Positions 5,100-47,800 of a stretch of DNA of 64,000 nt are shown here, piece by piece. Made by a program: the position numbers and the translations under genes. Below the pieces are notes generated by a model that saw nothing but the letters and a program-made list of their open reading frames with translations, was not told where the DNA came from and did no database searches. The stretch is from positions 1-64,000 of the forward strand of contig JAAOMT010000459.1 in NCBI GenBank assembly GCA_016748015.1. The letters are read 5' to 3'. The stretch is from Geosiphon pyriformis uo1. Its lineage: Eukaryota > Fungi > Glomeromycota. The first letter of the stretch is position 1; the number at the start of each line of letters is the position of its first letter.

Positions 5100-7400
5100 G
5101 AGCGTAAAAAATAATCTCATATTAATAAAATAATTTTTTACTTTTAAATATTAATAAAATAATTTTAATAATTGAATTTTAAAGCCAAAATTTTTTTTAA
5201 TTTTTTTGATTAAAAAATATTTATATTTATATGAAATTTTTTTATTTCCAACAGAATATTTGGCAAAAAAAATAATAACTCGTGATTTATGATAAAAAAA
5301 AATTTTTTCAATTCATTTTTAAAAAAGAAATTATATATATATATATGTTTGAAAAATAACTTAATATAATAGTCAAATTTTTTTTAATTTTAATTATTAA
5401 ATGTAGATAATAAATTGTACTTGTTTTTTTTTATTGATAATAAACTATACATTATTAGAATTAATAATAATAATATTAATAATATTAATAAAGTTTATTA
5501 ATTATGTAGTATATTTTAATTTGTAAAATTATCAATAAATAATATTTATAATTAAATTTTAAATATAAAATTGATTTTTATTATTATTTATATTTATATT
5601 GTATTATTTTTATTTATTTGCATTAAAACAAAAACATTATTTTTTTTTGTATTTCATTATCCAATAAATAATTAATATGAAAAGTCAAACTTCAAAAAAA
5701 AAAGATTTTTGAAAATAATGCTTTTTTAAACTATTTTATTAAGTTTAATTTACAAAAATATTATTAATAATTTTATTGGAAAGTAAAAATTGTTTTATCT
5801 TAATTTTAAGTTTAATATAAAGAGTCTTTTGGTTTCTGATTTGTTTTTTGTAGCTAGGAAATCTGCTTAGACTGTTCGTGCGGGTTCTTCTGTTTTGTCT
5901 GTTTGATGAGTTCGGGTGGCTGGTCACATATAGCAAGTGCGTGAGCTGCGCCAAGTTTAGAGTTTTCCTTGATTCGTTATCGCATAATAAAATATATATA
6001 TGTAAATTTTCAATTGACAGATTATAAGTAAATAAATAAAATTATTTAATATATGTATTTTAAAAATAGGGTATTTCATGCTTTTATTATAATTTTTTTC
6101 AACTCTTTACAATTTTCTAAATTTGGTTTATTACATAAACAAATAAACAAATAAACAAATAAAAAAAGCTTATTTTTTTTATTATTAAATTTTATTGCAA
6201 AATAATTTTTTGTTCTTAAAATTATTCTCATGTTAAAATTTATTCTTGTTTATTTATAAATTTCAAAATAATTATTATTATTGAGATACTTAATATATAT
6301 TTGTGTAATTGTTTTTTTTTTTTTTTAAACAAAATAAATCTATTTTAACTGTTTTTTTTTTTATATTAAAATTTCACAGTATTTTTAAAAAACTAAAATA
6401 ATATTTTATTAATAATAAAGTATTATTTTAATTTTGTATTTTCAATTTATTTGGCTTTATTTCAAATTTTCTATTAACATAAAAATGTTTTTTAAAAGCT
6501 TTTGAAAAATTTTTTGAACATAAAATTGGTGTGTTTTTTTTTAGTTTTTTGTTTTTAAAATACACAAAAAAATTATTTTGAAATCTTTTTATAATCAATT
6601 TAATCATATTAATTGTAATTTTTTTTTGGTCAATCAGTTTTTATTTAATTTTTTGTATATTATATATTTAATAATAAATATTTAATATATCAATTTTATC
6701 TTAATTTAAAAAAGATATTCTTATATGACTTTTGATAATTTTTTGCCAATATTTTTAAAACAGGCTGTATTAATTATTAAAAAAATAAATTTTATTTTAT
6801 TTTATTTAATTTTATTTTATTTAATATTTATAAAAACGAATTGAAACTTTATAATTTTTTTAATTTTGCAAAGTAGGCAAAAAATTTCAATATTAATATT
6901 ATTTTAAACTAAATTACAAAAATATTATATATTTATAAGTCAAAATGAATTTATTATTTGAAATTCTATAAATAAGTAAATATTTAAAATTGAATTAAAG
7001 TATTAAATTGAAAGAATTAATCAGGTTATAAAAGTTTATAAATAATTTATTTATTTATTTAATTATATATTTTAAAAATTGGTACTGTAATTGATTGGAA
7101 TTCCTAAAAGTAAAAAATTGCAATTTTTAAATTAATAAAATGAAAATTAAACCGTCAATTCACACAATGTAAAATAATTATTAATTGAATTATTCTTTTA
7201 AAATTTTCTAAATTAATTATTCAACTTATTTCATTATTAAATTTTGATTTTAATAAAATACTTTTCAAAAGCTGTTTTTTTTTAATGTCTTATTTCAATT
7301 TTCAAAGTTTTAATTAGAATAAATTCCAATACAGAGGAATCAATAAACTTTTAAATCATAAAACCTTTTTGAGCCTCAATAAATAATCAAAAATAAAATT
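5100..7400. other. ultra AT-rich block containing a small GC-richer island at about 5825-5990
   Basis: Base composition by eye; boundaries approximate. Confidence 0.8.
5825..5995 (+). mobile_element. relic 3' end of a diverged LINE (dyad motif, then TTTAGA...AATAAA)
   Basis: GGGTGGCTGGTCACATATAGCAAGTGCGTGAGCTGCGCCAAGTTTAGA aligns without gaps to the LINE 3' UTR at 35850-35900 (reverse complement). Confidence 0.6.
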
Positions 7401-7577
7401 GCATGCATTATTTTCATGTAAATTTTTAATGGCTCACAGCTTTCACCATTGAAATATTTTTGAGCTTTGGACAAAATTCGAGCATCTTCCAAGTGACTAT
7501 TTTCACTTTCTCACACACAAAATTTTTGTAGCCTGAAATAAAAAGCTACCGATCTTATTTAGAAGTCACCTACTGAT

Positions 7578-7580
<3 letters not shown>

Positions 7581-7617
<37 letters not shown>
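7581..7617 (+). repeat. (CT)n microsatellite
   Basis: Visible run. Confidence 0.95.
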
Positions 7618-7618
<1 letters not shown>

Positions 7619-8208
7619 AAAGTTTAACTTGACAGTTAGGCTTTTCTTTGAAGTTTCTCTATCTATTAGAATGCAGGTTTAATCTAAACTTGTGATCCTG
7701 AGCTTTGATCGAAAAATAATTTAAAGCCCCCAATAATTGTTTATGCGAGCGCCAATTATTGGCACAATCCAAATAAGTCGTTGATTAAAAGAGTTTTTCA
7801 AAAAAAAAAAATAATCGTTTTTTTTTCCTGAACAATGCTAAACCCCTATTAATTTATTATTAATCTCACGAGATATCCAAATTTGGATTGAGAATATTTT
7901 TAGAAAAGGATATTTTAAAGTCAGTAAATAAAAAACTTTATTTTAAATTGCAATACCCATTTTTCGAACTTGATCTTGATAACTATCTCGGAATTGTGAA
8001 AAAAAATTAAAAAAAATTAAAAAAAGGGCTTGGAATTATTTTAATTTCCCATCTATATATCTCATTTTTATTAAAATCATAGATATTTTCCTTCAACAGC
8101 TCTAACTTAAAACTTGAAAATTAATAGCGCTTACAGGTATAGTAATAAATGAAAATTGACCATCTGATTTTCACACTATTTTTAAAATATGAGAGAATCG
8201 TGTGATTG

Positions 8209-8212
<4 letters not shown>

Positions 8213-8259
<47 letters not shown>
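8213..8259 (+). repeat. (AC)n microsatellite
   Basis: Visible run with one interruption. Confidence 0.95.
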
Positions 8260-8260
<1 letters not shown>

Positions 8261-8596
8261 AATTTAACAGCCAATTATTGTTACAATTAAAGGATTCACA
8301 GACTCGTGCTACAAAGACAAATGAAAACTGAAATTGTGTAATGCAGCACAAAAAACACATCAAACGACACACATATGTAGACTTGGATTACCAAGGAAAT
8401 TATTGAAAGGCATACAAAATTGTAACGCTATTATCTTTTATAGGTATTCGCGTTTCCCTCATTTTAACCTTTTTCAGTTATCAAATTTTGCTTATCTTAT
8501 TATAAATATATATATTCCCAGACCAATAATATTCTAATATTCCCCCACTTTTTAAAATAACTGTCACATAGCCATAGCCGCGTGTCTTTCCTTCTA

Positions 8597-8631
<35 letters not shown>

Positions 8632-9540: not shown

Positions 9541-9566
9541 GTGTGTGTGTGTGTGTGTGTGTGTGT
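9541..9566 (+). repeat. (GT)n microsatellite; a second run lies at about 9023-9040
   Basis: Visible run; source of several spurious ORFs. Confidence 0.95.
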
Positions 9567-10011
9567 ATATCTTGTGTTGCTTCTTTTTTTTTTAAAAATA
9601 AAACACAAAAACTTGTTCAAAAAGTGGTTGACCAATATAAACGAGTATTTGACCACCAGCCACATAACTTCAAATATCATATTCTTTTTCCGTTTCCTTT
9701 CTTTTATACACCACTGAGCTCTTTAATAGTTCTTTCTTTTCTACTTTTATTGGTTTATTCTCTCTTTTTTTCTCAATCTCTCCCTGGCTTTGGTTCTCCA
9801 AATAAGAAGAAAAGAGGCGCAACAATTCACACGTTCTTATTGTTTTGCGAGTCGACAAGAAGTTACCTTTTAAGGTTGGTGACCTGAACTCGTGGCGAAC
9901 CACCCGTTTAATTCTTATTTTTTATTTATTTTTTTTGAAAGGTAGCAATAGCTAAGGTATCCTTTGTCATCTTTAATCATTATTTTTAGTTAGAAAACCT
10001 GGAACATTACA

Positions 10012-10679: not shown

Positions 10680-10710
<31 letters not shown>

Positions 10711-11888
10711 TCTCGCGTTATTTCTATCTTTGAAATGACCAGTTCTCACCATTTCAACAGTGTTTAGATTAACGAAAGGGTCTGAATTTACGTACTAATC
10801 TAATTATCTCATTAATCTTTAGATGCTGTAATGAACTGACAAATATACCACCAGAGATTGGTCACATGAAGAACCTCACAGCCCTTGACGTGTCCGAGAA
10901 TCGTCTCCAAACCATTCCGGATACAATAGGATTTTTGCACAAACTTGTGGAGCTCAAATTGTCCAAAAATCAATTGATTTCTATACCATCGTCGATTGGA
11001 TCAATGAAGAAACTTGGCACCCTTTACCTTGACCATAATAGAATTACCGAGTTGCCATCCGAGATTGGCCAAATCAAAGATCTTGTTAATTTGGATGTGT
11101 CTCATAATCCACTTACTGTTTTGCCGGCCGAAATTGGTCGGCTTCAATACCTTCGCAAGCTTCGCATCGATGACTGTCCGTTGCAACCAGGATTTGTGCA
11201 CGAACTTGCTCATTCACCACCTTCATTAATGGAACTTGCCGCTCGTACCATTGTTCGTCAACAAATTCCAATTCTCCAAGATACCACCCAAGATATTAAG
11301 AATTATCTTGCTAGTGCCAAAAAATGTAGTTTTTGTGCTGGACCTTACTTTGAGAACTTTGTCAAACGAGGCAAAATCATTGAAAAAAATGATCATCCAA
11401 TTCCTTTGGAGTATCGTTTATGTTGTCCTCATTGGAACACTGAACAAGAACGTGTCAGCCTATTGTTTTGTGCCTTGCCCGATACCGCGCCCAGTGCACA
11501 ACCTTACAAACATCCACGTCATACATCTCCGTCTAATGTTTCATCAAAATCATCACATAGAGCTAAGGCACTTGATATTAATGATACATCATCTGATCCT
11601 CATTCCAAGATGCAAAGACGTGCGTCTACACGCTCAGTTACCATTCCCATCAGCTCACTTACAAAGTCACCTTCACTACCAAATCTTCCATTGATGACGT
11701 CTCCGCAACGGACAAGTGATCGACCACAACAAGAAGAGAAAGCCCCAAACAAGAAAAACAGTACATCAAAAAGAGGTAGTTTGTCATTATGGCCTTCAAG
11801 AAAAAATAGCGCTGCTTCAGGTATTCTTGCAAAACCATCAAGAAATAGCTCAACTGTATCCAGAGTGAGTTCAAGATGGCGTGTATGA
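10012..11888 (+). CDS. leucine-rich repeat protein with BC-box and C-terminal Cys motif (LRRC58-like); exons 10012-10574 and 10823-11888
   Basis: Intron GTAAGT at 10575, branch TACTAAT near 10793, TAG ending 10822. Splicing joins the ORFs in frame (TTSLQI-CCNELTNIPPEIGHM). Canonical LxxLxLxxNxL repeats are followed by PPSLMELAARTIVR and CSFC...LEYRLCCPHW. N-terminus MGAQLT. Confidence 0.9.
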
Positions 11889-14239: not shown

Positions 14240-16550
14240 AATATATATATAAATTAAACCAAATTAATTTCAGGTTATTTTAAAATTTACTGATTAAAAC
14301 ATAAATTTATATCTCATTTTTAAATTAATTTAATTTAATCTGTTTTTGTTTATAAAAATATTTATTATTGATTTTTATAAATAATCTGATTTTTAAAACT
14401 TCGTTATTAAACCAAAATTATTGTTAAAATATGTAATATTAAAATTAAATTAAATTATATAATTTATGTAGTTTCAATATACAACCAGTTATCTAAACCT
14501 GAGTTAATAAAATATTATTTTTTTACCAATTGTAATTTATATATAATATACATAAAATAACTTTTAATAAACTAAGTAGTACATTAAATAGTTTACTTAA
14601 AGACTTTAAGTTTATTAAAAATTTCTAATAAGTTTTAAAAACATAGTAATTAGTTTGTTTAAAATTAGCTTTTAAATTTTTTAAATAAATGTGTTTTTAT
14701 AAAAAAAATTTTAGTCTTATAAAAAAAGCATTAATATTAATAATTTTTAAATTATATAAGTAAAAAAATAGTAATCAACATATATTCTATTGGTTTAATT
14801 AAATTTATTAGAAAAATATTATTTAAGTTGTTTTTAAATTATATTTTTTTAATATATAACTTAAAAAATATTAAAATAATAATTTTTAGTGCTTAAAAAC
14901 ATATTTATAAGTGCTCTAATTTCTATTATTGTTTTAATAATAAAAAATATTTTAGAAAAACTATAAATTTTGGTTGGTATTTTAGAATATATATAAAACA
15001 TATAATTTTATAAATTGGCTGTATTTAACAATTTTAGTTTTATTAACAATTATAAAATGTATAATAGTTTTAATCAAAAGATTTTTTTAAAAAAAAAATT
15101 TTTATGATTTTTTAATATAAAATAAATTTATTATATATTATTAAAATAAATAAAATTGATAATATTTTTTATTTAATTAAAAAAAAATCAATTAAATTTT
15201 TTTCTAATTTGGTATTAGAAAAAACTGTTTTTAAAAAACAATTTTGTTACTTGGTGTTTTTAGTTTTGTAATTTATAATTTATAAATAATTTTGTGTTTA
15301 AAATATTTGTAAAACATAAAATTTAATAAATAAAAAAAATTTAAGATTTTTTAAATAAAAACAAATTAATATTAATAATTAAGTTTTTTTTTTAAACTGT
15401 AGAATTTAATTAACAAATATTAATATTAATAATAAATGTTTTTATTTATTTTTGTCTTTTGGTGTTTTTAATTTTAAGCTTATTAATATAATATTTATAA
15501 TATACAAAGTTTATTTAATATTATATTATGTTTAAATAAGTTTATAAACTTTAAATTTAAATTTTTACAAATAAATCTTTTATATATTTTGATTTATTAA
15601 ATATAAAATATAATATTATTGTCTTTTTAATATAGTAAACTTGAATATTATTATTATTATTATTTAATTTTTATTAAACTATAAATAATTATTTTAATAT
15701 TAAAATATATTTTTGTTTTTATTTTATTAATATTGTTTTTAATAACTAAGTTGTTTTATATAAATATAACTCAAATTATAATAATTAAAATTTTAAGTAT
15801 TGTAAGAAATATTGAATAAAAATCTTTAAATTTTGGATTTTATTAAGATTAAAAACTTGAATATAAAATAATTTAAAGTTAATAAACATTTAAAATTTAA
15901 AAAAACAAAATATTTCAAATTTTTTATTTTTGTAAAACATTTTGTTTTAACTGTATTTTAAATAGTAATTATTATTTTATATAATATTTAATTGAGTTTA
16001 TTAATTATATTAATTGAAAAATTTTCTGTATTGCTAAGTATATAAACAGAAATTTTGTAAGTAATATTAATTAAATTATTATTGTTATAATTTAATATCT
16101 TAATAATTTTATAGTTTTTGGTTTTAATAATATAAAAACGTTAAACTTATTATATATATAATATAAAATATTACATAAAAGACTATCTGTAATAATTAAA
16201 AAGCAACATTATAATTTTAAATATTTGAATATTTTTTGTATTTGTTTTTAATTACATAAATTATTAATGTTTTTTTAGATAATTCAAATACATTTGCAAT
16301 TTTTTTAAAATGTGTAAGAATTTTGTATTTTATATGTTGTCAAAAATTTTAAATTTTAAATCTATACTAGTAAAATATTAAGTTTTGGTAAAAATGTTAA
16401 TATAATACTATTTAAAATTGTAAATGGCTTTTGAACTGATCTTTTTAACTGTGAATTTTTTTAATTTTTTTGTAAATTTGCTTATATAATTAAAAAATAT
16501 TTATATGCTGATTAGTATTAAGTAGTAATTAAACTATACTTATTATGCAT

Positions 16551-16601
<51 letters not shown>

Positions 16602-16920
16602 TAAGTAATTTAGTTTTAAATTGGTTTTATTAAAAACCCAATTACAAAATTTGGTTTGTTTAATAGAATTTATTGTTAAATCAATTGGCTATTTAATGAT
16701 ATTAGTTATTTTGTTATTATTTATTAAAAATACTTTACTTTTAAATATAAATTAATTTTTAAAGCACAGATAAAAAGTTTTAAGTAGTTTTGTTAAGGAT
16801 TTAATTAATATTAAGAGAAAATATGAATTAATTCGCTTTAATAATAGTAAAATGAAAGATGTTAAAAATAATGTTTTTAATAAGATAATTGTGCTTTTGA
16901 AGTTATAAAGCTTTAATATT
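14240..16920. other. ultra AT-rich block, including (AAT)n at about 16552-16596
   Basis: For example, 15841-15900 has 5 G+C in 60 nt. Confidence 0.85.
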
Positions 16921-17099
16921 TAAGGCTAAGCCTAAATGGCTGGTTACGTGTTAAAACCACATGATCCATGTTTATAGTTAATACAAGCACTATAATTAAA
17001 ATAAATAGTGAAAGGAGCACACTTTGTTATAGTAATAAAAAAATAAAATAGTTAAAAAGTTACCTTCTTGAAAAAAAATTTGAGATTATGACAAATGAG

Positions 17100-17665
17100 G
17101 AGAATTAAGTATATACTATTTGGAATTTGGCAACTTCCAAACTCATAGTGTTGGGTTTATTAAAAAATCCTAGAAATCGTAAAGAAAATACGTAATTATC
17201 TCTTTAGAATTACAAAATAAAGTGTTAAAATATCGGGAGAGAATTCAGGCCGAGCGATTTTTAACTTTTTTTGTTTATGTAACTTTCTTGAGCTTTTTTT
17301 GGGCCTGTACAACATGATTGTTCGAACACTTTTGATAAAGATTGATAGCCTCAACAATATTCTGCTGCGTACCAATTACTTTCTCATAAAAGAGGCCCAA
17401 ATTAAACTGACCAATTTAGTTTCCGGCATCCGCTGCTATTGAATAGTATTCAAATGCTATTTCTGAATTTCTCGTCGTTCCTTCTCCATTAGCATAACAA
17501 AGTGCAAAATTTTATTGTGTATCTGTGTGTCCTGCCTCGGCAGCTATTGAATAGAGTTCAAATTCTTTTTCTGAATTTTTTGTCGTTCTCCATCCATTTT
17601 GCTAACAAAGTTCAAGATTGTATTGTACATGTGTATTACCCGCCTCAGCAGTTTTTGAATAGAAA
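17100..17665 (-). pseudogene. SEL1/TPR-repeat gene 3' fragment plus 3' flank; paralogue of 30033-30900
   Basis: Minus-strand repeats such as LCYANGEGTTRNSEIAFEYYSIAADAGN, with frameshifts. The flank 17100-17262 matches 30033-30190. Confidence 0.8.
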
Positions 17666-18736
17666 TTTAATAATAAACTTTTAATTTGGTAATAGATTAT
17701 GATAAAGCTTTGAATTACAAGTTTTGACTAATTAGTTGATATTTTTCTTTTACATACTTTATTAAGCAACTCAAACATCTTGTAAAATATCTTCCCTTCA
17801 TTATAAAACCTTTCAATTCTGAAAAGTTTTTTCGATCCGGTTTTCTATATTTCTCTTGACTATGGTCTACAAAAAAATTTAGGTAAGGAATTTCACTAGA
17901 ATGAATTTAAATTAGAAAGAGTATAAAAAATTTATATGATATGAATTTTATCCAAAGACTTTTTTTACATACTCTATATTGATATCAACTAATATAAAAT
18001 AATATTTTGATTCATTAGTAACTTTTAACATTATTTCAAAAGTTTTACTTTTTTTTTATTTTAATAAAACTTATAATTTTTTAGTAAATCAAATAGTTCT
18101 TAATTAAGAGGACTACTAAATTAGAATAGGTTTCTTTAAATTTTTTTTAGATTTAACCATGCTTTGATTTCGACTGCTGTAACGAAAATAATTTTCATGC
18201 ACGATTTTATCGGCTGTGAGGAGTTAACTTGTGTTGGTGGCCAGGACGATAAATTTCCGGAATCTTGCTATTATTGAATGTGTGAACATCAGTTACTGTG
18301 TGATTACAATGACTGTTGCGGCAAAAGTACTTAAGGACTTCATAGTTCAATTTTACAGTGGATAAACAAAAATGGGTGACGGTAGAGGTTTCGTGATATT
18401 GGTGTGAATAAAATAACATTTATTTATCACTCTTTTTGAAATTTAGAAACGCCACAAATTTTGAAAATACTGTTGCTGTCATTATTCTCTGCTAGGGACT
18501 ATAGTTAATGTGGAAAAATCAAAAATTATATATAAAATAAATCAATTAATTAATTTTTTAACTATGTGAATATTGAGAAACAACTTAAATAGGAACTCCT
18601 CATTTAAATTACTTATAAACTTAGTATTAATAGAAAAATTAATAGAAGCTCTTAAAAAGTTCATTTTGAATATATCCTATTAACTTTTTATTTTTTATCC
18701 GCATTTATCCTTTGTCCTTTATTCTTTATCCACATT

Positions 18737-28029: not shown

Positions 28030-28900
28030 GAGATTCTAAGATTTATAAAAAAAGAAAAAACAATACTAATTTGATAATTATATAATAACATAAATTTTAT
28101 TATAAATTTGAAATAACAATTAATTTGATTTAAAAAAAATTGAATGTAAAATAAATTATAAAATAACTTTTTATCTTTTTATATTATAAACTTTTTAAAT
28201 TAAGGATTAATTATTTTATTTTTATATTTATTAAGGTTTTTAAATTAAAAATTATATTACAAGTTTTTTATTACAAAATTAATATTATTTGAATTTAATA
28301 ATAATTTTTGCATAATAAAATTAAATTTAATATTAAATATTAATGAATATTTTAATTTTAAAATAGTATTGTTTAAATTATTGGCTATATATACAATAAT
28401 AACTAATTAATATTGAAATAAATAAAATTTTGATTTTGATTCTAATTTTTTAATATATATAAATTTCAAAATTTAAATAAAATTAAAAAAACCAATATAA
28501 TTACGTAATTATTGTTAAAATATGAATTACTATGTAAAATTTGAACATTATTATTAAAATAAATGTAATAATTTCAAATAATATAACTTATCAAATTTAA
28601 TGGTTAAATTTTTTTTAATATTAACAATTAATTAAAATATTATTTATATTAATATTTATATTCATTTTTTTATTTGTAATTATATTCTCTTTATATTTTT
28701 AAATTTTTTAAATTTTTTTTTATAATTAAAAATATTTACACATTTTTTATAATTATTATATTGGATTTTGAAATTTAACAAAAAACATATATCATTTTAA
28801 AATATAAATTATAATGAAATAATTAATTTAAAATTATTTCTTTGTAAAAAAATCAGCAATTAATTAATTTTTAATTTTAACACTTATATATATTTTTTTC
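28030..28900. other. ultra AT-rich block directly upstream of PDK1
   Basis: Base composition by eye. Confidence 0.8.
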
Positions 28901-30189
28901 TTTGTTTTATTCTCCAACACATATGATAAATCTGGATCATGCGCTTTCTACACGTGACTAGACGCCCGTTACTACTCATTAATACAAATAATTTAAAATA
29001 TAAACTGATCATTTAATCTTTATTGAATAAGAACATATTTTTTTGTTTTCAATATTGTTTGTATTAGGATTTTATCTTTAAATGCAATTATTTCTATTGT
29101 TTGCTCATTTTTTAAAGTAGTTTCTGTAAGAAAAATTAGGGAAAATAATACTAAATGCTTGCTTTTAAATATAGTGATCTCGTTATCCTTACATCCCAAT
29201 ATTTCTTCTGGTATTAAACAATCTAGTAAACCCTGTACAAATTTGGATACTTGATTCAAAGTGCAAGAGATGCCCTTAGGATTTTCGTTATTTATAACAT
29301 CATCCTTATTTGATACAAGAAAGTGTCAGATTAACTAACTCCTTGTGCTTAATATAATCTTTATAGTCCATCGAATGGACTCACAACGACAGAACACATT
29401 TATCTCAAAAATTTTAATATTGGAAATTAGCATGACGAGGAATCATTTCTTCTACCAAAATTACTGCTGACGCCAGAAATGCAGGAAACAATTTATGGTC
29501 GTATGAAAAAAATATGTAATTTTTGTGATAAGATGAAAGTTAAAACAAGACATTGCAATCCTTATATAATTGAAACTGTTCTGGGAAAAATTAGAGGAGA
29601 ATTATCATATTAATTGATTCACATGTAATCTCAAACTTAATATAGAGTAAATTGCTTACACTGAGGCGGTAAACCTAACCGGACGGTCTTGGTTTCACGA
29701 GCAGGAATATAAATAAGCGCACGATAAAAAATATACCCCCCTTGTGAGCATTTGCACAATATTTTATAAAAGTTAATAAACAATAGGGTTTCGTGAAATT
29801 ATCTCCTAAGAGTTTCCCAATGGAGGAAGTTTATTGAAAGGCTCTTGAAACATGAGGCTCATTTCTGAAGTTGGAGATGAACCAACAATGGCTTCGTTTT
29901 ATGATTTCTTTGGCTTAATGTTATCGTTGAGAGCTCTTTTGCTTGAGATAAATGAATTAGCTCCCCTGATTGTTGTTGCCTACTACATGTATAATTAATG
30001 AGGTTGTTGTTATTGAAACACTTTCAATTCGGAGAATTAGGTATATACTATTTGGGATTCAAACTCATAGGGTTGGATTAATTAAAAAATCCTAGAAATT
30101 GTAAAAGAAAATAAAAGCGGAATGATCTCTTTAGAATTGCAAAATAAAGTATTAAAATATCAGGAGAGAATTCAGGCTGAGAGATTTTT

Positions 30190-32266: not shown

Positions 32267-32299
32267 GGGAGAATTATATTTTATTATTTTTACATAAAT

Positions 32300-32760: not shown

Positions 32761-32799
32761 AGTGAAATTTCTGATGATTTGCTTTTTTAATTTAGAACC

Positions 32800-35782: not shown

Positions 35783-35915
35783 TTTTTTTTTTTTTACGTT
35801 TATTGAGTGAAGTCCAAACACTACCTAATACTATACATCAAATAATTGATCTAAATTAGGCGTAAATCATGTACTTTCTACACGTGACTAGCCACTCAGG
35901 CCAATCAGAACAACA

Positions 35916-38900
35916 CTATACATCTATATGAATGGAAACCATATTTAAAGCACCTGAAATAAACAAATTAAATTTATGCAAACCAAACCTAACACTCAAT
36001 GCATTGTCAATACCCAACAACTTGACAACTCCAGCTGAATACAGGGAAGACAGACCAGAAATAGTAACTGGCATAGAACTGTCTCAAAGAATCAATCCAT
36101 GTTTCTCCATAAATGCATGATGTTTGACACGGACCAACCAAACCTTATCTCTAAAAGCTAGGCAAAAATCACGGACAAAGTCCACAATTTTCGCACCAGC
36201 AAGTTTCAGATCACCAAAAACAGAAACCACCTCAAAAAACCAATCATTAAAAACAAAGCCTTTGCATAGAGCAACACGGACTGAGGTGTCAACAATACAT
36301 GAGGAAAGAGTTCGCAGCACGTGAGAAAAAGGGCAATGAAGGCCAGAAATACCTTCTCATTTAACCGCAAAATTACCAAGCAGCCAATCACAACTGGCAA
36401 AGTCAGAATCACAGGAAAAAACATGGTCCGAGACCTCTACACACTCACAATACAAGCAAACCACACTAAGGTAACTTCTATCATAAAGGCGCTTGCAAAT
36501 GGCCACAGGCAGTCTATGATGCAGAGCTTTTATAAAATACATGCACAAACCAGCAGTCCGTATACTGGTAAAGCCAGCAGCCATGTATGAATCAGGATGC
36601 CAAACAGAAAAAGACCTGTGCCAATTAATATCAGTAAGCAATTCGCCAGTGACAACTCTAGTACTCGAACCGAAACCCCAATACAAATGGTGAATGAACT
36701 GATAAATGTCACACACAAAATGTCTAAAATTACCCGAAACAGAACTACCACCAGCCAGGATGAACTGCTAATTCAGCCAGGGGAGAAGAACAAAATCAGA
36801 AAAAGCCATATGGCCAGCCTGTTCATCAGCCCGGTCATTACCTATAACACCAGAATGTCTTTTAATCTTACACCAGCTGACATCCAACCTCTTAACACGA
36901 ACAAGATTAGCAATATGACGATGCTCCACTCAACAACTATTCCGAAAGTCTGGATGTGCCAAACCCAATTCCGACTTGCAGGCATCCAATGCGGCTTGAC
37001 TATCCGAAAATAAGTAAACTTTGCTAACTGCAGGAACACACTCGAGAGCAAGTGCAATAGCTTGCAATTCCACCAAAGTAGATGACAACAAACCTGAGAC
37101 CCTAACACCCAAACCCATATTAATATCATCAAAGAAAACCACCACATCTGATTTAACACTGAGAGTACCCAAACCAGTCAAGGATCCATCAGTATAAACT
37201 GAAAGGCTATCAGCACCCCATCCCAATAAACAATTATGAACCAAATCAAAATCAGTGAATTCCAAGACATTAAGAGCAAAAGAAACGCCCACCAAACAGT
37301 TATGAACAGAAGAAAATAACTCTGCACTATCAAGATAACCAACAGAAACACTAAACCAATCAGGAATAGAGCCACGTGGATCCAGCCTTTTCCAATGCTT
37401 GAAAGTCTTCCAATCAAAAGCACCACCATTGTGATGACGCAATTGTTCTACAAAGGCAATTCTATACCACCGAAGTGAGGATAGACACTTAGAAAATTTC
37501 ACCTCACCAAGAACCAAAGACATGAGAATACTATGGGAGAATCGGAATACATTGGAGCCAAGACCACTAAAAGATAAACTGCAATTGGCAAAAATACAAA
37601 CCACACCTGCCAGAAAATTGTTTGAAGGATTCAATTTTAAATGAGCCGGGGAGACTAAAGGGTGCACAAAACGCCAGCTCAAAGTTTGTAAGTCATGAGA
37701 CCTATGGAGAAACAAACAACCCAGGATTCCAGCAGCATTGGCAAAACACACTACGGACACCAATTTACTCTCAGCCTGAATCTGTTCAAAAGTTTTTAAG
37801 CCATAAAGGGAGGAATGATGAAAAGCATTATTGGGGAAGTCTGAAGGAAGACCCACTTTGAACTTAAAGTCTTTACGAATTAAAGCATCCCATTTACAGC
37901 AAACATTAAGTGGAACAAAACTAAATTGTGTCCTATAACTAATGATGGAGTGAAGAACCACTGAAACCAAATATGAGAACTGCTTATTAGAGATGGTCTT
38001 TTTCAGGACGAGATTGGTGAAAAACCAGACATCCAAATGCGCCTTGGCCAAACTGGGCTTCGACAAACCACCCATAGACAGAAAAATGCCCAAATACCAG
38101 TAAGGTTCCCTCTTCTTGACAATAGAAATTAGTGCACCACTAATTGTCAAAAAGGGGCTCACAACCCTAGAGTTAATGGGAATTGCCACTGTTTTATCAT
38201 TGTTTATTGAAATATCATTAATTCTAAAAAATTCATTAGCAATATTGAGAATGTGTTGTATTGCAGTCTAACTGCTGCCAACCCAAATTGTATTGTCCAC
38301 AAAAGCACCAGCAGCAAAGAAAAAAGAAAAACCAGCCTGAAGTTCAACATGGCCAGTCTTAGCAACGAAATGAGAATTCAACCTATATCCATAAAATTCT
38401 TCTTGCCTCTTGACTTTACACAAAAGAAAATCATAAAATATATGCCAGAGAAGAGATGAGAACACTTTCCCTTGATTGAGATCATCATGGACTTAATAAC
38501 CATCAGTTAAGCCAAAGTCAGTCATTACTCTGTTGACTCGGTTATTGTGAATGCCACCAAAAAATTGAATGAACCTGCCACACATTTTAATCCTAATCAG
38601 ACTCTTTTTTAAATGCTCCCAGCCAACAAAATCATAGGCCTTCTTCATGTCCTGCAATACCAGCCAAAGTTCACAGTTCTTCTCCAGAGCATCCTCAACC
38701 ACAGAGCTAACAGCAAAGATAGGAGACTGTATCATTGTACTCTTCAAAACCAAAAAATTGTCCCCACAGAGAACGTTGTGAGTACTGCATGCCAAAGAAA
38801 TCCTGTCCGAGAAGATCTTTGAAAGAATTTTACAAGCAGTTTCAATCAAAGCAATGAGTCAGGTGTTCATAAAAACTCCTTCCCACTCATAAGGCTTGGG

Positions 38901-40606
38901 GATCATAGACACCCAGGCTTTCTTTCAAGGACCAAGAACTGACTCATGAAGCAAACAAGAGTTCAAGAGCACCAACAACATATTCAGAATCGATTCGTCA
39001 TAATGTTTCCAAAGCTCATTCAAAATACCAGACAAACCAGCAGCCTTATCATTAGGCAAGTCTGAAACAACACCAAGCAACTCACCAGAACTAATAGGGT
39101 CCATAATTCTCGAAAATACATCATCAAATATGTACTTCAAGGGTTGGTACTGGCAACACCAATCAGCAAAGATATCAGTGACCAACTCGCATTTTCTGGT
39201 CCAGCCTTCCATTATAACATCTACCTTAAATTTAACTAAACTAGGATCTAAAACCAGTTCATTATCAACAACCAAGTAATCCAATACCACCTTGTAAAAG
39301 GGGCACTCTAGCACACTCCTAATTGTATGACCCTTATCCACCTCAAAACTTTCTATCCTCCTACTAACTGCTGATCTAATATGAGATTCTTCAGCATGCT
39401 TCAACTCGGACAATTTAGAGGAACAATACAACTTCCTAACTCTAAACAAGACAGATCTTATAACCTCAAAATGCGACCCCAAAAAAAAAAGAGACTCCAC
39501 CACAGAAGCATTTGTAGCATCCAATGAGTTCCACATACTCAGTAATACAACAAATTCTTTAAAAGAAACCAAATGTAATGCTTTAACTAGTTTAGACACC
39601 AAAAGTTCTAGCTTGTGAAACTTAGAAGATTTCTTAGTAAACACATTATCATAACTCTTGAACCATTTCTTTTTGAAAACATTATTCACTGATAAGCACA
39701 CAATTTTGTGGATGATGTTTCACATAGCATCCAAATCCAAAAACAATAGAGCAGCATCAAACTTGCACTTAAACATTGCCACAGTGGCAGCAGAAGATTC
39801 CTTGAATACAGCCTATTTGACAGCCATAGCATTTTTAAAATTGAACTTCCAACAATCCTTATTCACCTGTTTGCGAAGGGACATCAAATTAACATTCAAA
39901 AGACCACCCAAGCCCACAGAAACAGTAACAGCCTTATGATCAGTATCAAAATATTCATCAACTCTGGTTACACTATGATCTAAAATTGTGTTAACTAAGC
40001 TTGATGACACAAACACATAATCAATAGTCTTGGTCACCTTTCAAAAATTGGTCCAAGTCGCATTCTTTTCAAACAAGCTCTCTCTCAAGGCATTGACCAA
40101 ACCCAAATCAAAACATTTCCTGAAACTAGCACACTTGTGAGAGCTATTTTCATTGAAATTGCTGCCCAATATTATGAAAAAAGACTCATTAACAGCTTTA
40201 GCAATCAAAAAATTTATCTTGTCCATTTGTGAGAAGTGTGTAGATACTGAAGCACCAGCATACAAACCCAGAATTGATACTGAAAGCTTATTTTTGAAAA
40301 ACAGTTTGACAGACAAAAGATGACCAGAAACCTCAAAAACTTTACATACATGTTTTGCCAAAGTGTTGTTCATAATGATTGCCACACCAGAACCAAGATA
40401 ACCAGATCCAAACCAAAAACAAAGACCTGAACACCATCGAATTTATTAGCAATCTAAGGCCAAACCTTATCTTTTAACTTTGTCTCAGTAATAATTGAAA
40501 CCAAATTGTTCATATCTCTGTGCCAATGTATAATGTCCTCCTGCTTTGCTGAATTGTTTATTCCCCTGACATTACACGTGGCTATTTTCTATACAAAATT
40601 ATTTAT
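35916..40606 (-). pseudogene. LINE ORF2: APE endonuclease - RT - RNase H - Cys/His finger
   Basis: IATCNVRG, TIDYVFV and TDHKAV (APE). QDMKKAYD and AGAFVDN (RT, DD mutated). VYTDGS, ELQAIALAL and FSDSQAAL (RNase H). CLYCECVEVSDHVFSC. Confidence 0.9.
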
Positions 40607-42491
40607 TGAGATACAGAAGAGACCGCAGAACCCGAGCCAGCACACATCTGATCTAACTTCCCTAATACCAAACAAACCAAAGCTTCAAGAGCCATCAACT
40701 TCGACTTCAAACAGCCCACTTTTGAAGTCAAAATTTTTGAACTACTTGAACCTGAACTTGGGGCACCAGAGGAAACCGAAGAAAGAAGAAGAACCGCAGA
40801 CTTAAGTTCATCCAAAACCATATCCAAATCAAATTCCATATTAACCAAACCAGGAACAACCAAGAGCTGAGAGGAGGAGGCAAGAGCCAAGGGCACCAAG
40901 TTTAAACTGTCAAGTTTGTTCATAATACCAGACATTTTATCCATGAGAAGTTCCAAAGAGCACTCCAAAAAAACAAGACAAGTTTCCAAAAATAAACTAA
41001 TAGGACCCGCAGGAAATAAGTGACCAACCACACCTGAGGCACCAAAAGAAGAGTCAAAACCAGGACCAGAACCAAAGTGAGGACTATTAAACAAAGATAC
41101 CAAGAAGACAATCTGGGCCCATGATTTGCTGCTGAATACAGCCAGTCTGAAAATAGGCACACTCTTTTTTGCATATAGCTTGGCCAATTGGAGGCAATTT
41201 TCATTAGAGATAACTCTTTTAAATGACTTGAAAATAGTAGGAGAGATTGAGATTTCAGTATTACACTTTAGAACAGAATGATCAAGTTTCCCACATTGTT
41301 CGCACTAAATCATGTCCAATCTAGCCCAACACAGTCTCACCCCACCAAAAATAGGCTCCATACAAAACGCAGACTCCAATTTCTTGTCATTCTCAAAACA
41401 AACCACAGCACAACGAACCCTATTACCAGTGTCTAAGGATTGATTTATAACACAAGTTTTCTCACCAGCCTCTGCCAAAAGATTGCCAAGATCATGAGCC
41501 ATTGTTCCTACTGGCAAAGTAAACAAAAGTGCCCTATACCAATCTCTAGATGCCCATGTCTTATGATCCCTCACAGGTTTGGCCACATGCACTGAATCTT
41601 TCTTGATTAAACATGACTACTTAGCTGCCAACTGATCTGCCTGACTTGATTCAGCAAACTCCACCACAGCCCAATGAGTTGCAATCAGATTGACACCACT
41701 TGACCAAACTCGGATACTGTGGCAATGATCATTTCTTTTGGCGTATCCATGAGAATTTCCTTAATAACTATGGCCCAATCTGAGCAAACTCTTTGTCTCT
41801 TAAGATCACTGTTTACTATGATGTTATTTTCCTTGGCCAATGAGACAGCTTTTTCTATGCTTGCTTCAGAGGTAAAGGTAGATCTGATGATCTCTTCAAA
41901 TTTTGAGGAGGTAGTAACCCCTTCAAAACCATTGATTTCTGAAAATAATTTTCTTATGGCATAAGTTTTGGCCATTGCCGATATCTCTTCCACAGCCGAA
42001 AGATTGATATCCAAAGCAAAAGATTTTTTTACAGCCACTTCCACCTGAGTTTTAATGATTTTAGGATCAATCTATGCCTTATCCAAAGAAAAAAACTTAC
42101 AAGAAGGAAGAAAAACCTCCTCTTCCTCCTCCATGTCGAAATTAATAAAGCCGAAAAGAGAGCCAAAAATCGCACCATTATTGAAATGCTTGGTTTGGGG
42201 TGTATTCATCTTGGAATCAGATACTCCTTCACTTTCAGAAGTCTCCCTATCAGTATCCATGCTATTAAACTGCCCGACCACTTGACCAGATCCATTACTT
42301 TTGAGAGCCACACTATTACTTGATAGCTTAGCACTATCAGAAGGATTCTTAACCTTATAACTTGAATCACTACTGACTGAACCAGAAGTTGGAATCTTAG
42401 TTGACCTTTTTTTAGCACCAGTACTACTTATGGGAGCAGTCAGATCAACAACAAAAAGATTTGTTTCTTGTAAAGTGATGGAAGACAGTAT
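40603..42491 (-). pseudogene. LINE ORF1 (RRM-like region, CCHC knuckle, coiled coil)
   Basis: CEQCGKLDHSVLKC near 41300. Fragments are homologous to ORF1 of copy 3. Confidence 0.8.
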
Positions 42492-42569
42492 GAAATAACA
42501 AAAAAAACTTTTTTCAAAATATGCTTTTTGAGGATTTTTGAAGGTAAGAGAGAAAGAAGTTTTTTTGGA

Positions 42570-44897
42570 CTTATGTTAATATTAAATAATTAATTAATAT
42601 TTTTTTTATATACTTAATTAAATTAATTATGATAAATTTTTTCAATTTATTTTTTTATGTTTTTTTAATTATGTTTTAGATAAATAGTTAATTAATTACT
42701 TTAAAAAATTTTACAAGAAATTTTTTTTTGGCTTTTTAATAAATATAAACAAAATTTTTTAATTATTTAAAAAAAAATAATAGATGAATTTTATTCAAAA
42801 ACTTTTTTTATATATTCTATATTATTTGTTTTTAATACTAATAAATAAATATTAATATTTTTAACTTTTTTATTAAATTTATAATTTATTAATAAATTAA
42901 ATAATGTTTAATTTAATTAAAACTTATATGATCTATATTTTATATTTTATATTTTTAATTATGTTTATTTTGAAAATATTTTTTAAAAAAAAATAATTAT
43001 ATTGATTAATTAATTTTTTTAATTAGTTTTAAACAATCATTTTTTATATTTAATTATTTAAATTATTAGATTTTATATTTAAATAACAGTTAAATTTTTT
43101 TTAATAAAAAATATTAAATAAAGAAATTAAATTTATAAGAATTTAATATGCAAAATTAGTTTTATAAAATATCTTAAGGAAATAAATATATATTACATTA
43201 TTATTGATTACTATAGTATCATTCTTCTCTTTTTTTTGATAAGATATACAATCAAATATTTTATAATAATGTTATTTTACATCATAATAATATGTTATTT
43301 ATGATACACAATTATAAATATATGTATTATAAATATATTGTATAATATAATTAAATTTATATAAATATAATCAAATTTATGATTGAAATTATTATAAAAA
43401 TATATTAATCTAAACATCTTAACTTATTGTATTGTCTTATTTATATAAAAATAACTACAAATTTATGTTTAATTTAATGTGTTTTTTATTTTTTGATCTA
43501 GTATGTCTTTTATTTTCTGATTTATTATGTCTTTAATATTGTATTTTTGATTTCATTTATTACTAAATTTTTCTAATATACAAGTTTTTTTAACTATACT
43601 ACAATACAACAACTTTTATATTATAAAACTTCTACAAATTAACATTAAAGATTTTGCAATTTATTTAGATATAATTATATAATAAACACAGAAAATTTAA
43701 TATACTAAAAGTTTAATTTATATATCATAAATTAAATTATATTTCTATATTCTAATTAGCTAATAAAAATCCAAAATCACATGTTATATAAAATCTTGTG
43801 AAACATAAAATTTTAAATTTCTTTTCTTTTTTTCTTTTATAATAACATGATATATATTCATTTCTTAATTGTTATTTTTTTTAAAAAAGTTGAAAATAAA
43901 AATTATTAACAAAAAATAATATTTATTATAGTTTTATAAATATTGTTTGTATTTTTAATAAATATTTATTTAATATATTTTGCAAAATTAACACAAATAA
44001 AATTAAAAAAATAATAATCAAAAAAATAAACAAATTATAATTGTTATAATTAATTAATTATTAATTTAAATTAATTTATATAAAATATTTTTTTACAGTT
44101 TTAAAAAATTTTGTTTATATATTTTTAATAATTTAATTAATAATTAAATCAATAATCAAGTTAAAAAATTACATTAATAATTAATTTTAAAAATAAAATA
44201 GTTTAAATAAATAATATTAAAATTAATATATATAATTAATAAAACTAAAAATTTAAATTAAAATATTTTTATTTAATTTAAAAATACATTAATAAATAAT
44301 ACATTTTTAAATTAAACTTATAATATGTTTTTTTATTATACTAAGTATTTGTATTATAATATTTAATAAAATAGCAAAAAAATCATAAATATTAACAAAC
44401 ACAAAATTATGAATATATAATAAATTTTTTTTCGAATATAATTCTAAATTTAAAATTTAATAACTAAATATACTTTTTATAATCTATTATTAATTAATAA
44501 ACAAAAGTAATTACTTTTAATATTATAGTTTTATATTATAAAAACAGACAAAATTTTAACAATTTAATTTTCAAACAAAATATTTTTATATATAATTATA
44601 TATATATTATTCAAAACTAAAACACCCAAGAAATATTCAAACTTAAATTAATTATAAATTGTCAAAATAAAAAATATTTATTTAATACTTTTTAATAAAT
44701 TAAGTTTATTTTATATATAAAACTGTAATCTAAAATTTTTATTTTATTATATTAAATATATTATTATAAATAAAAATTTGAATTATTAATTAACATAAAA
44801 TTATTCTTATAATTATTATTATTAATTAATATATTATTATTTAAAATTATTACTTATTAAATTACTAAATTATTAAATATTACTATCTAATTAATAA
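42570..44897. other. ultra AT-rich block between LINE copies 1 and 2
   Basis: For example, 44821-44880 has 2 G+C in 60 nt. Confidence 0.9.
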
Positions 44898-47800
44898 TTT
44901 TTTTTTTATTCTTTTAATAAGCAAAGTTCATATACTACCTAGAACTATACATCAAAGAAATGATCTAAACTAGGTGTAAATCATGCATTCTCTACACGTG
45001 ACCAGCTATTCAAACCAGTTAGGACAACACTATGTAGCTATAACAACAGAAACTGAAGAGTTTATACTTAAAAAAAATAAACAAGGTTTATAAAATCCAA
45101 AACAGACACCAAAAGCTTTAGATATCCCAAGCAATTTAATTACACCAGCTAAGAACTTCGAAGCCGAACCAGAAATTGAGACAGAAACTGAGCCATCCAT
45201 AAGGATCAGCTCACACTTCTCCATGAATATGTGATGTTTAGCATGAACCAACCAAATGTCATTTCTAAAAGTAAGACAAAGAGAGTGTGCAAAATTAGTA
45301 ATCCTAACACCAGCAATCTTGGGATCATAAAAGACAAAAACAGTTTCTGGAAACCATCCATTGAAAACAAAACTCTTAAAAAAAGCTGAGAACACTGAAA
45401 GATCTGGAGCACAGATTGACAACAATTGCAACACACATGAGAAAAAAAAAAAAGACCAGAAAGTTCCTTCCAAGAGGACATGCTGGACTTCAAAATCTGG
45501 TTACAAGCTGAGCTATTAACTGTATAAAAAAACATGTGATCTGACACTTCCACCACTTCACAATACAGACAAAAAACACTGGGATAGCATTTATTATAAA
45601 GTTGCTTTTGAACAGCCATGAAAAGCCAATGGTGCAAAGCCTTCATAAAGTAGGTATAAGAATTAGTAGTGTGTTTGCTGATAAAGCCCGTGGCCATGTG
45701 CGAATCAAGATGCCACACTTGAAAAAATTTGAACCAATTGACATCCAAAAGCAAATCACCCACCAGAAAGCCAGAACCAGAACCAACTTCCCAATGTGCA
45801 CAACAAACAGCACAGAAAACATCCTGAACAAAATGCCTAGAATTACCAAAAACTATACCACCATTGGCCAATAAAAAATGTTTATTCATGGAAGGAGGAA
45901 GAAACCAATTAGAGAAGGAGGCAGCATCAACAAAACTGTTGGCATAGTTATTTCCCAAAATGCCAAAGTGGCCTTTTATCTTGTGCCAGCTGACCTTCAA
46001 ATTCTTGTTGTAAATAATATCCCTAATGTGCTGACACTCGACCCAAAACTGATTGTGAAAGTCAGGACACACTAAACCCAACTCTGATTTGCAAGCATCC
46101 AAAGCAGCCTAACTATCTGAAAACAAGCGAACAGAACAAGATGCTGGTATACACTCTAGAGCCAAAGCAATGGCCTGCAACTCCACCAAAGTAGATGAAA
46201 CCAAACCACACACACTGATACTCAAACCCAAATTAATGTCTTTAAAAAAAGCCACAGCACCAGCTCGACAATCCAGCATGCCCAAGTTTTTCAGAGAACC
46301 ATCCATATAAACAGACAGACTACCAGAGCCAACTTAAGAGAGATAATCATTGACAGATATGAAATCATTAGACCCACAAATGTTCAGAGAGCCAACACTA
46401 ATCAAAGCCAAGAGAGATAAAGGCAAACCACTAAGAAATACAACAGAAAGCTCAAACCACTCAGAAACTGGGCCACGAGGGTCCAGTCTTTTCTACCGCT
46501 TAAAGGTGCACCAGTTGAAGATATCACCACAATGATCCTGAAGCTGATCCACAAAGACAATGCCATAATGTCAGAGAGAAGGCAAGAACTTAAAAAACAA
46601 GGGTTTGCCCAAAACAGTAGACATAGGCACTCTATCACAAAGCCAAAAAGAGCTGGCCAAAGAGCCACCCAAAGATAAATTGCATCTGAAAAAAATGCAA
46701 ACCATACTTGACAAGAAATTATTGGAAACACTAACACGAATACAAGCTGAAGAACTCAATGGATGAATGGGGTGCCAATACAGGATTTGTAAGTCATGAG
46801 ACTTGTGACTGAACAATTGACCTAGAACTCCGTAGAAGTTTGCAAAACTAATAAGTGAAGCAACCTTACTTTCAGACTGACACTGGGAAAAGGATTTCAA
46901 ACCATAAAAAGAAGGATAGTGAATCGTATCACTGGAAAAATTGAAAGAGAGACCAGATTTGAGTTTCAAACCCTTGCGAATCAGAGCATTCCACTTGTTG
47001 CACACACCAACAGGAACAAAGCTGAACTGCATTCTGTAGCTGATTATAGGATGGAGAACTGTCAACACCAGGTACAAAAACTGTTTATCTGAAACCACTC
47101 TTTTCAGAACCAAATTATTGAAGAAACAAACATCCAAATGTGCCTTAGCCAAACTAGGCTTAGAAAGACCATCAGTTGAAAAAAAAATATTAAGATACTA
47201 ATAAGATTCGCCTTTTTTGGCTATAGAAATGAGTGAACCACTGATGAAAAAAGACAGACTGTTGATCCTGCTATTGATAGAAACAGTCGTTATTAATTAA
47301 AATGTCATTAATCCGAAAAAATTCATTAGCAATATCAAGAATATGTTGAGTAGCAGCGTGACTACTGTCAATCCAAATTGTGTCATCAACAAAGGCCCCA
47401 GCAGCGAAAAAAGAAGAAAGCCCAGCCTAAGATTCAGCATGACCACTTCTAAAGATAAAATAGGAATTGAGTCTGTATCCACACACACTCTTCTGATGCT
47501 TGACTTCACACAAAAGAGGATCATAAAATATGTGCCAAAGAAGAGATGAAAAAACTTCTCCTTGGTCTAACCTATCATGCACACGATAGCTATTAGTTAA
47601 ACCAAAATCTGTTATAACCTGATTGGTCCGACTTCTATGAATATCACCAAAAAAACGTATAAACTTGCCACACATTTTGATCCTGACCAAACACTTCTTG
47701 AGATGTTCCCACCCAACAGAATTATATGCCTTGCACATGTCTTGCAACACCAGCCAGAGCTCCCGATTTTTCTCCAAAGCATCCTCAACCACCAAATTAA

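Follow-up and report, generated by a model that had tools for sequence, protein, structure and literature searches.

The recurrent 34-base motif found in this part of the AT-rich Geosiphon pyriformis genome belongs to a LINE of ~7.5 kb, a non-LTR retrotransposon with ORF1, reverse transcriptase (RT) and RNase H, which is present in this genome in hundreds to thousands of copies; within the 3′ untranslated tail of this element (~120 nt), no block is more conserved. The motif spreads as a part of the tail, in full-length, 5′-truncated and tail-only copies, and once inserted it accumulates C>T and G>A changes as fast as the element around it. Its erosion does not differ from that of its surroundings, which marks it as a tail signal of the ordinary retrotransposon type; it is no boundary element. 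Taken as a whole, the explanation that the motif is a conserved block of a LINE tail that would be recognised by RT is considered probable.

The pieces of ORF2 matched Pfam RVT_1 and RNase_H, and the solved structure closest to the RT was that of human L1 ORF2p (E 1e-14); the RRM match of ORF1 was weak and below threshold. No Pfam match to an endonuclease of the APE or REL type was obtained at E < 0.01 on the N-terminal ORF2 pieces, a weak negative result because these pieces are damaged by stops and transitions. The motif block starts ~20 nt 3′ of the ORF2 stop codon, and ends ~80 nt before poly(A). This stop is the TAG of TAGTGTTGT; GGCTGG comes 25 nt after it, and poly(A) begins ~95 nt further downstream. 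The distance from ORF1 to the downstream tail was constant, at ~4.75 kb, in 27 copies or more. Those of the top genome matches to ORF1 for which a partner was present among the tails listed were full-length elements, and ORF1 lying directly upstream of a tail, the sign of a half-LINE, was not seen among the sampled copies.

The abundance of the family was evident from several searches of the 128-Mb genome. The 23-mer core, with up to two mismatches, was found 788 times against 0 in the reversed control, and the anchors flanking the motif gave 370 matches. The model of the whole 119-nt LINE 3′ tail, designated R1, was used to score tail copies; its 150 scored matches all had E < 5e-26 and bit scores of 125–142. 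An Rfam search with the tail returned no family, the sole match being at chance level, and a metagenome scan with a 27-mer gave zero matches.

A transition-tolerant scan of the window (the whole 64-kb stretch of DNA analysed) detected exactly the five motif copies listed in the initial annotation, at 5914(+), 16934(+), 28934–28967(−), 35864–35897(−) and 44978–45011(−); they aligned without indels, as had been described, and all five matched R1. LINE copy 1 (35799..42558, − strand) is near full length with in-frame stops and could be aligned, in purine/pyrimidine code, to positions 934–7760 of the reference copy. Its 3′ tail is complete (35800..35918, −; R1 135.4 bits, E 3e-32, model positions 1–119), contains the motif at 35864–35897 and is followed by poly(A) at ~35784–35799. 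LINE copy 2 (44913..50368, −), with ~75% identity to copy 1, is 5′-truncated (reference positions 2271–7751), carries its RT domain on one ORF fragment (Pfam RVT_1 at 47427–47960) and also ends in a complete tail (44914..45032, −; R1 121.1 bits, E 1.4e-28), with the motif at 44978–45011. The 3′ part, including the tail, is missing from LINE copy 3 (50365..53686, +; reference positions ~1117–4238). The tail of a diverged LINE lineage is located at 5893..6006 (+; R1 32.3 bits, E 9e-6), with the motif at 5914–5947 and ~100 nt of LINE-like sequence upstream; it matches the tail of a second lineage at L034:360–479.

For the remaining two copies, at 16.9 and 28.9 kb, a LINE body was undetectable directly upstream, in agreement with the initial annotation, but they are not bare motifs. 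The 16.9-kb “orphan” (16914..17029, +; motif 16934–16967) matched the whole 119-nt tail with 25.4 bits (E 5e-4), retains the H2 hairpin of the predicted tail fold and has an A-rich end extending to ~17049. The 28.9-kb “orphan” (28895..28989, −; motif 28934–28967) has a perfect 23-mer core and an internal deletion in the P2/P3 region, and its match to R1 was weak, at only 18.1 bits (E 0.04). As both match the whole-tail model, they are tail-only copies. No LINE homology was found in the 800 nt upstream of the 16.9-kb tail, even in purine/pyrimidine code, and the five weak relatives detected by BLAST in the genome all begin at the tail. Upstream of the 28.9-kb tail, neither a LINE nor a ghost body was found, and BLAST of the genome revealed no relatives. 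The flanks of the 16.9-kb tail (16901–16910 and 17050–17059) match at 9/10 positions, which is chance level in DNA this AT-rich, and the search for a target-site duplication at the 28.9-kb tail gave none that was clear, a result that is uninformative in such DNA. A tRNA-like head was searched for near the orphans and was absent. A foldback at locus L015, with an inverted second copy of the 5′ half of the motif, was considered as a MITE and rejected, being unique in the genome.

LINE copies throughout the genome have a common 3′ end and variable 5′ truncation. In at least 30 copies, homology ended 28, 41, 48, 84, 107 … 1354 nt upstream of the motif, with others reaching the edge of the examined DNA, and the 5′ ends are spread continuously over the range of 28 to ~1350 nt. 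The tail-only copies fall within this continuum; the orphans are thus short 5′-truncated insertions, the simpler origin that the initial annotation had set against its own proposals. The idea that short copies escape the mutation process, considered as a reason for the good preservation of the orphans, was unsupported (decay 0.37 in short vs 0.30 in long copies, p = 0.12).

Older LINEs, worn down by this same process of mutation, lie within the AT deserts, and newer copies adjoin them. In the window, the desert at 14600..16132 (+; GC 8–12%) is a ghost LINE, which aligns colinearly with LINE ORF2 when C is equated with T and G with A: three segments scored 129–383 bits against 99 bits for the best reversed-sequence control, and 49/363 ancestral G/C are left. 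The 3′ end of another ghost LINE lies at 44330..44604 (−; the same DNA as locus L049), in the desert adjoining copy 2, and the site where its tail motif is expected (~44195–44240) retains 0/15 G/C. In the loci flanking motif copies, 43 ghost LINE segments with GC < 0.17 were detected, and the desert LINEs beside the motif have lost ~85–90% of their G/C via C>T and G>A. In this respect the deserts resemble the AT-rich isochores produced in fungi by RIP-like, transition-only erosion of repeats. Such erosion explains the surroundings and not the motif, and the ~3× faster decay of CpG than of other G/C sites also fits deamination of methylated CpG.

The presence of an ultra-AT block near every window copy of the motif was confirmed, at ~95–110 nt, and extends to the genome as a whole: the 200-nt 3′ flank had < 20% GC in 86% of 106 genome copies vs 21% of window tiles. 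This desert adjacency is a property of the insertion sites, in line with the kind of alternative that the initial annotation had set against its own reading; LINE ends sit at desert edges because the deserts contain older, erased LINEs which newer copies adjoin. The motif does not bound the deserts, since the fall in GC, from ~0.40 to 0.06, occurs at +90 nt, that is, at the poly(A) junction.

The composition and decay of the motif bear directly on the proposal that it is a DNA element, a double E-box bound by bHLH proteins and carried by LINEs, that protects itself or the DNA around it from C-to-T erosion, or that marks where deserts end. CACGTG is the canonical E-box, recognised by bHLH factors such as Cbf1, USF or MiT. 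The ancestral tail contains this hexamer, its CpG is still present in 4/5 window copies (it is already gone, as CACATA, from the copy at 5914–5947), and the 16.9-kb tail retains 44–48% of its G/C beside a ghost body that retains 13.5%. However, the decay within subfamilies equals that of the flanks, both at CpG sites (0.320 in the motif vs 0.338 and 0.346) and at non-CpG sites (0.108 vs 0.112 and 0.120). Among 71 copies picked by flanking anchors only, and hence free of bias, CACGTG was intact in 20 (28%; lost in 72%) and its CpG in 21, and the apparent keeping of a CpG in CpG-poor surroundings was a small-sample effect. Decay of the motif rises together with that of the remaining tail (Spearman 0.53), and in five near-erased ghost LINEs picked by their bodies, 13/80 G/C were kept in the motif (16%) vs 61/422 in the body (14.5%). 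The GC step, moreover, lies ~90 nt off the motif. As for the 16.9-kb tail, it was considered as the 3′ end of the 14.6–16.1 kb ghost, but the intervening 800 nt aligned to ORF2 as poorly as did the reversed control. With no LINE homology between the two, the tail is best read as a probable separate, younger insertion next to the ghost. The E-boxes of inserted copies show no sign of selection or protection at the DNA level. The sequence thus already contradicts the proposal on every ground that had been named for giving it up, namely equal decay, truncated orphans and insertion-site adjacency; we regard it as refuted on this evidence, and its truth as extremely improbable.

As RNA, the tail is predicted to fold into four helices. 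In H1, bases around the stop codon would pair with the 3′ end; in H2, a predicted hairpin, GGCTGGTCA of the motif forms the 3′ arm; H3 is a putative small hairpin (CGUGUA-GAAAG-UGCAUG) over the E-box, in a register two off the dyad described in the initial annotation; and P2/P3 is a predicted long stem-loop directly after H3. Three well-preserved copies gave an identical four-helix MFE fold (z −2.5 to −3.3), the MFE fold of the copy 1 tail likewise has four helices (z −2.46), and RNAalifold agreed with the MFE fold except for H3. Decayed copies of two other lineages did not exceed shuffles in folding stability (z −0.55 and −0.62).

Compensatory changes between lineages appear to support only P2/P3 and, in part, H1/H2. 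In P2/P3 (alignment columns 56–103), 86% of cells were paired, 11/15 pairs had changed on both sides and 0/500 shuffles reached the observed value on all five measures, with slid controls far lower, and in H1 and H2 taken together 97% were paired, with 0/500 shuffles on three measures; in these figures, transition-only decay combined with G-U tolerance inflates the share of pairs kept, and part of what supports H1 and the 5′ arms of P2/P3 is built in, columns 2–10 and 60–71 having served as selection anchors for 71/102 rows. No covariation was found in the motif block, in the register of the dyad or in the MFE register of H3, where 92.3% of cells pair; H3 alone was no more stable than shuffles (z 0.06). 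The comparison of covariation with invariance that had been suggested gave a pattern in which the stems beside the motif covary and the motif block is near-invariant.

These results allow three further views of the block to be weighed. Read literally, the proposal of an 8-bp dyad, GTCACGTG-N7-YRCATGAT, that forms an RT-recognised RNA stem-loop and mobilises unrelated sequences is unlikely. In the dyad register 80.8% of cells can pair, and tail-only copies do exist, but covariation was no better than in shuffles (63, 336, 35, 247 and 79 of 500 reached the observed values), one position is a C-A mismatch in 77/102 rows, the hairpin would include three G-U pairs as well, and the lineage-specific changes at columns 33, 47 and 54 are uncompensated. 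Both MFE and RNAalifold place GGTCA in H2, the rest pairing two off the dyad register, and the orphans carry the whole tail and not the dyad alone. What stands of the proposal is the kind of structure, a conserved 3′ UTR at the LINE end that is predicted to fold stably and in which the neighbouring stems covary; the specific dyad does not stand as a supported hairpin.

That the block is functionless, its conservation being only apparent and due to the recent descent of most copies from one master, would agree with the near-identity of many copies (125–142 bits in 150 copies). It is nevertheless very unlikely, given that three or more lineages retain the block even though the stems beside it differ and have been rewritten (e.g., L015:1737–1856 and L034:360–479; L021:629–748), that there are zero transversions at positions 28–41 and 47–53 of the 70-mer in 71 copies, with loops and flanks varying, and that A/T columns are conserved at 0.96 in the motif vs 0.73–0.79 in the flanks. 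Being nearly invariant, the block is constrained as sequence. Such constraint could also reflect another cis function in active copies (transcription, termination, a polyadenylation signal or an antisense E-box promoter) with no binding of RT, and conservation of primary sequence without covariation, together with the two palindromic hexamer-like cores of the block, is in line with this. We consider it quite unlikely, as the block lies within a structured tail with covarying neighbour stems and right after the stop codon, which is the site of the RT signal in stringent LINEs (PMC4176376).

According to the preferred explanation, the tail would be a cis signal bound by the element’s own ORF2 protein, starting target-primed reverse transcription as in the “stringent” LINEs, whose ORF2 strictly recognises the stem-loop of the cognate 3′ tail (PMC4176376, PMC1636434). 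The constraint on the tail would act only on active master copies, which would account both for the conservation of the block across lineages and for its lack of protection once inserted. As biology, a LINE 3′ tail under conservation is of an already known kind. As in the tails of eel UnaL2 and zebrafish ZfL2-1 and ZfL2-2 (PMC1636434, PMC4176376), the stretch from the ORF2 stop to the 3′ end includes a conserved structured segment, which diverged lineages retain and which no truncated copy lacks. Those elements belong to the vertebrate L2 clade and have short-repeat ends and a single stem-loop of ~20–40 nt, whereas the Geosiphon LINE is fungal, encodes RNase H, ends in poly(A) or (TAA)n and has a predicted four-helix tail of ~115 nt. 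In R2 and SART1, which are site-specific elements of animals, a structured multi-helix 3′ UTR RNA is required for reverse transcription and recognition of the template by RT. The Geosiphon tail is alike in its predicted multi-helix 3′ UTR and has no sequence or Rfam similarity to them.

A more specific role may be sketched from the predicted fold, although we regard it as unlikely. If H1 joins the ORF2 stop region to the bases that immediately precede poly(A), the ribosome, on termination, would come to lie on the very structure to which newly made ORF2 protein would have to bind, and would unwind it. The sequence-specific contact would be the invariant block, composed of H3 and the 3′ arm of H2, in a four-way-junction signal of a kind undescribed for LINEs. 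Were this true, the ribosome on the tail structure would provide a physical basis for cis-preference.

The present analysis removes an attractive but wrong idea, since sequence data by themselves rule out the LINE-borne E-boxes as boundary or anti-silencing elements, and it explains the LINE ends at desert edges by older LINEs erased through C>T and G>A changes and adjoined by newer copies. For an early-diverging, AM-related fungus, R1 provides a defined model of a 119-nt tail that includes an invariant block and whose fold can be tested. The model can serve in the annotation of LINEs, of tail-only copies and of possible non-autonomous partners, and in planning retrotransposition assays.

The five 34-mers of the window, at 5914(+), 16934(+), 28934-28967(-), 35864-35897(-) and 44978-45011(-), proved to have the positions and strands assigned to them by the initial annotation; they align without gaps, and a transition-tolerant scan of the whole window matched only these five copies. 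With at most two mismatches allowed, the 23-base core of the motif has 788 matches in the 128.3-Mb genome (792 contigs), against 0 for the control pattern, i.e., the core read backwards, so the repetition of the motif is not a matter of chance. With the exception of its claim about the CpG, discussed below, the original observation was borne out as a whole.

In 28 of 30 loci with a perfect core, fetched with their flanks, the motif is located inside one common longer sequence, which terminates ~95 nt downstream of the motif in a poly(A) or (TAA)n tract. In the longer upstream stretches there is an ORF1, whose RRM match is weak and sub-threshold, and an ORF2, which has RT and RNase H domains and is interrupted by single in-frame stops; the RT domain, present in the window's own LINE copies as well, is nearest among solved structures to human L1 ORF2p (E 1e-14). 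ORF2 terminates at the TAG of TAGTGTTGT, and GGCTGG follows 25 nt later, which places the 34-mer at about positions 22-55 of a 119-nt 3' UTR. Since the distance from the ORF1 end to this tail is constant (~4.75 kb in at least 27 copies), the element is a LINE of about 7.5 kb. R1, a covariance model of the 119-nt tail, matches all five window copies across its full length with 135, 121, 32, 25 and 18 bits (E 0.04 for the last and weakest), and in the genome, among the matches listed, all of at least 150 candidates have E below 5e-26.

Two window copies, at 16.9 and 28.9 kb, had been described as motifs lacking a recognisable LINE body. The body is indeed absent, but neither copy is a bare motif: the copy at 16914-17029 still has the tail's hairpin arm upstream, its stem downstream and its terminal box, and that at 28895-28989 still has the motif and the terminal part of the tail, with the middle deleted. 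Among 111 copies, homology to full-length elements stops 28, 41, 48, 84, 107, 118 and so on up to 1354 nt upstream of the motif; such a graded series of end-points is typical of LINE 5' truncation, with the tail-only copies at its extreme. Paralogous stretches with 108-nt (36-aa) repeats, up to 87% identical, are found at 17181-17692 and 30108-30820, each with one of the tail-only copies about 0.25-1.1 kb away; on the minus strand, the repeats have a Sel1/TPR-type-like reading.

Alignment of DNA with C merged with T and G merged with A revealed ghost LINEs, i.e., stretches now stripped of most of their G/C. Two such ghosts, at 14600-16132(+) (49/363 G/C kept) and 44330-44604(-), are colinear with LINE ORF2 in the merged coding; the window ghosts lie in AT deserts of 8-12% GC and keep about 10-18% of their ancestral G/C, and the fetched loci, roughly 330 kb in total, contain 43 ghost segments. 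Of its G/C, the 16.9-kb tail has 44-48% left, against 13.5% for the neighbouring ghost, and the 800 nt separating them gave no LINE homology, merged coding included. We read this tail as probably a separate, later insertion than the adjoining ghost; five weak relatives of the tail are listed in the genome.

Several other features were noticed. A foldback element with a perfect motif copy (L015:1314-1540, minus strand; G000:C490:645328-645461) carries an inverted copy of the 5' half of the motif about 115 nt after the motif, giving arms of about 22 nt, and its interior contains a different 7-bp hairpin and a LINE-like terminal box; this arrangement is unique in the genome. In the window, an LTR-type retroelement fragment occupies 57008-63951, with dUTPase and RT domains at 57554-59203 on the minus strand and inverted repeats (95% identical) at 59207-59472/63686-63951 and 59755-59935/63073-63253. 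A 340-aa ORF with leucine-rich repeats (10866-11888(+); Pfam LRR_8, LRR_14) lies where the window, repeats excluded, is richest in GC.

The initial annotation offered two explanations of the motif, namely, an RNA stem-loop for recognition by the reverse transcriptase and a protein-bound DNA element that resists or bounds the C-to-T erosion producing the deserts. The fate of the motif after insertion was followed in copies chosen by two anchors flanking the motif rather than by the motif itself (370 in the genome, 71 of them fetched). These copies differ almost only by C>T and G>A, and A/T positions are nearly invariant. The claim that the motif keeps a CpG in CpG-poor surroundings did not survive this sampling, since the two CpG bases of CACGTG rank with the most poorly conserved (C 0.68, G 0.56) and the E-box is intact in only 20 of the 71 copies. 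Measured against a global ancestral state, the motif seemed better preserved than its flanks, but this measure confounds lineage differences with post-insertion decay. When subfamilies were defined by transversions only and changes were counted within groups, the decayed fractions of motif and flanks were equal, both for CpG (motif 0.320, ORF2 end 0.338, rest of the tail 0.346) and for other G/C (0.108, 0.112 and 0.120, respectively), and motif decay correlated with decay elsewhere in the tail (Spearman 0.53). In five ghosts picked by their body, with the alignment continuing through the tail, the motif kept 13/80 G/C and the body 61/422, and the motif CpG was gone in all five. Taken together, the subfamily decay, the correlation and the ghost counts mean that the motif is unprotected from erosion; it decays like its flanks and like the ghost body, and the idea of a DNA element that resists or bounds erosion is refuted on the terms set by its own proposer. 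Within subfamilies (loci L041-L110), CpG sites are ~3 times more decayed than other G/C (0.32-0.35 vs 0.11-0.12), so repeat mutation depends on sequence context and may be due in part to deamination of methylated CpG.

As for the desert edges, mean GC is near 0.40 along the ORF2 end and the tail and drops to 0.06 in the bin starting +90 nt from GGCTGG, a position that coincides with the poly(A) junction and not with the motif. The 3' flank is below 20% GC in 86% of 106 copies, compared to 21% of window tiles, and the deserts hold older, eroded LINEs. This pattern is most simply read as new copies landing, or persisting, in AT-rich graveyards of their older counterparts. Several tails are arranged tail-to-tail, within about 20 nt of a second tail (L057:1321-1545 and L102, both strands; L101, G000:C555:208077-208386). 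Two such pairs are just about 18-20 nt apart, with long poly(A) absent; the close pairs suggest insertion into the A/T tract of a pre-existing tail.

The stem-loop explanation was right in kind, but the helix as drawn was wrong. The minimum-energy fold, identical for three well-preserved tails (z -2.5 to -3.3), predicts a helix (H1) between the region of the stop codon and the final bases preceding the A-rich end, a 9-bp hairpin (H2) whose 3' arm is GGCTGGTCA of the motif, a 6-bp hairpin (H3, CGUGUA-GAAAG-UGCAUG) and a long, interrupted stem-loop (P2/P3). From 102 tails, in which two stretches had served as selection anchors for 71 rows, RNAalifold recovered H1, H2, P2 and P3 but not H3, leaving the E-box region unpaired. 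With the proportion of kept pairs inflated by transition-only decay and G-U tolerance, 80.8% of cells were paired for the proposed dyad (a C-A mismatch at one position in 77/102 rows), 92.3% for the H3 register, 86.2% for P2/P3 and 96.9% for H1+H2. Covariation, which rests on few independent lineages, was not above 500 shuffles for either the dyad or the H3 register; for P2/P3, where both sides changed in 11 of 15 pairs, 0/500 shuffles reached the observed value on all five measures, as was the case on three measures for H1+H2. Some of the P2/P3 changes go beyond C>T decay, e.g., a second lineage has GCCA/UGGC in place of AUCA/UGAU. Among lineages with rewritten neighbouring stems, the motif block hardly varies and is therefore constrained as sequence.

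In "stringent" LINEs, recognition of the 3' stem-loop by the cognate ORF2 protein is strict (PMC4176376, PMC1636434). The tail described here resembles theirs in being conserved and structured, in lying directly after the stop codon and in being present in every truncated copy, and by this analogy the ORF2 protein of the element would recognise the 3' tail. The feature is of a known type, probably a 3' tail signal of a LINE, here from an early-diverging fungus.
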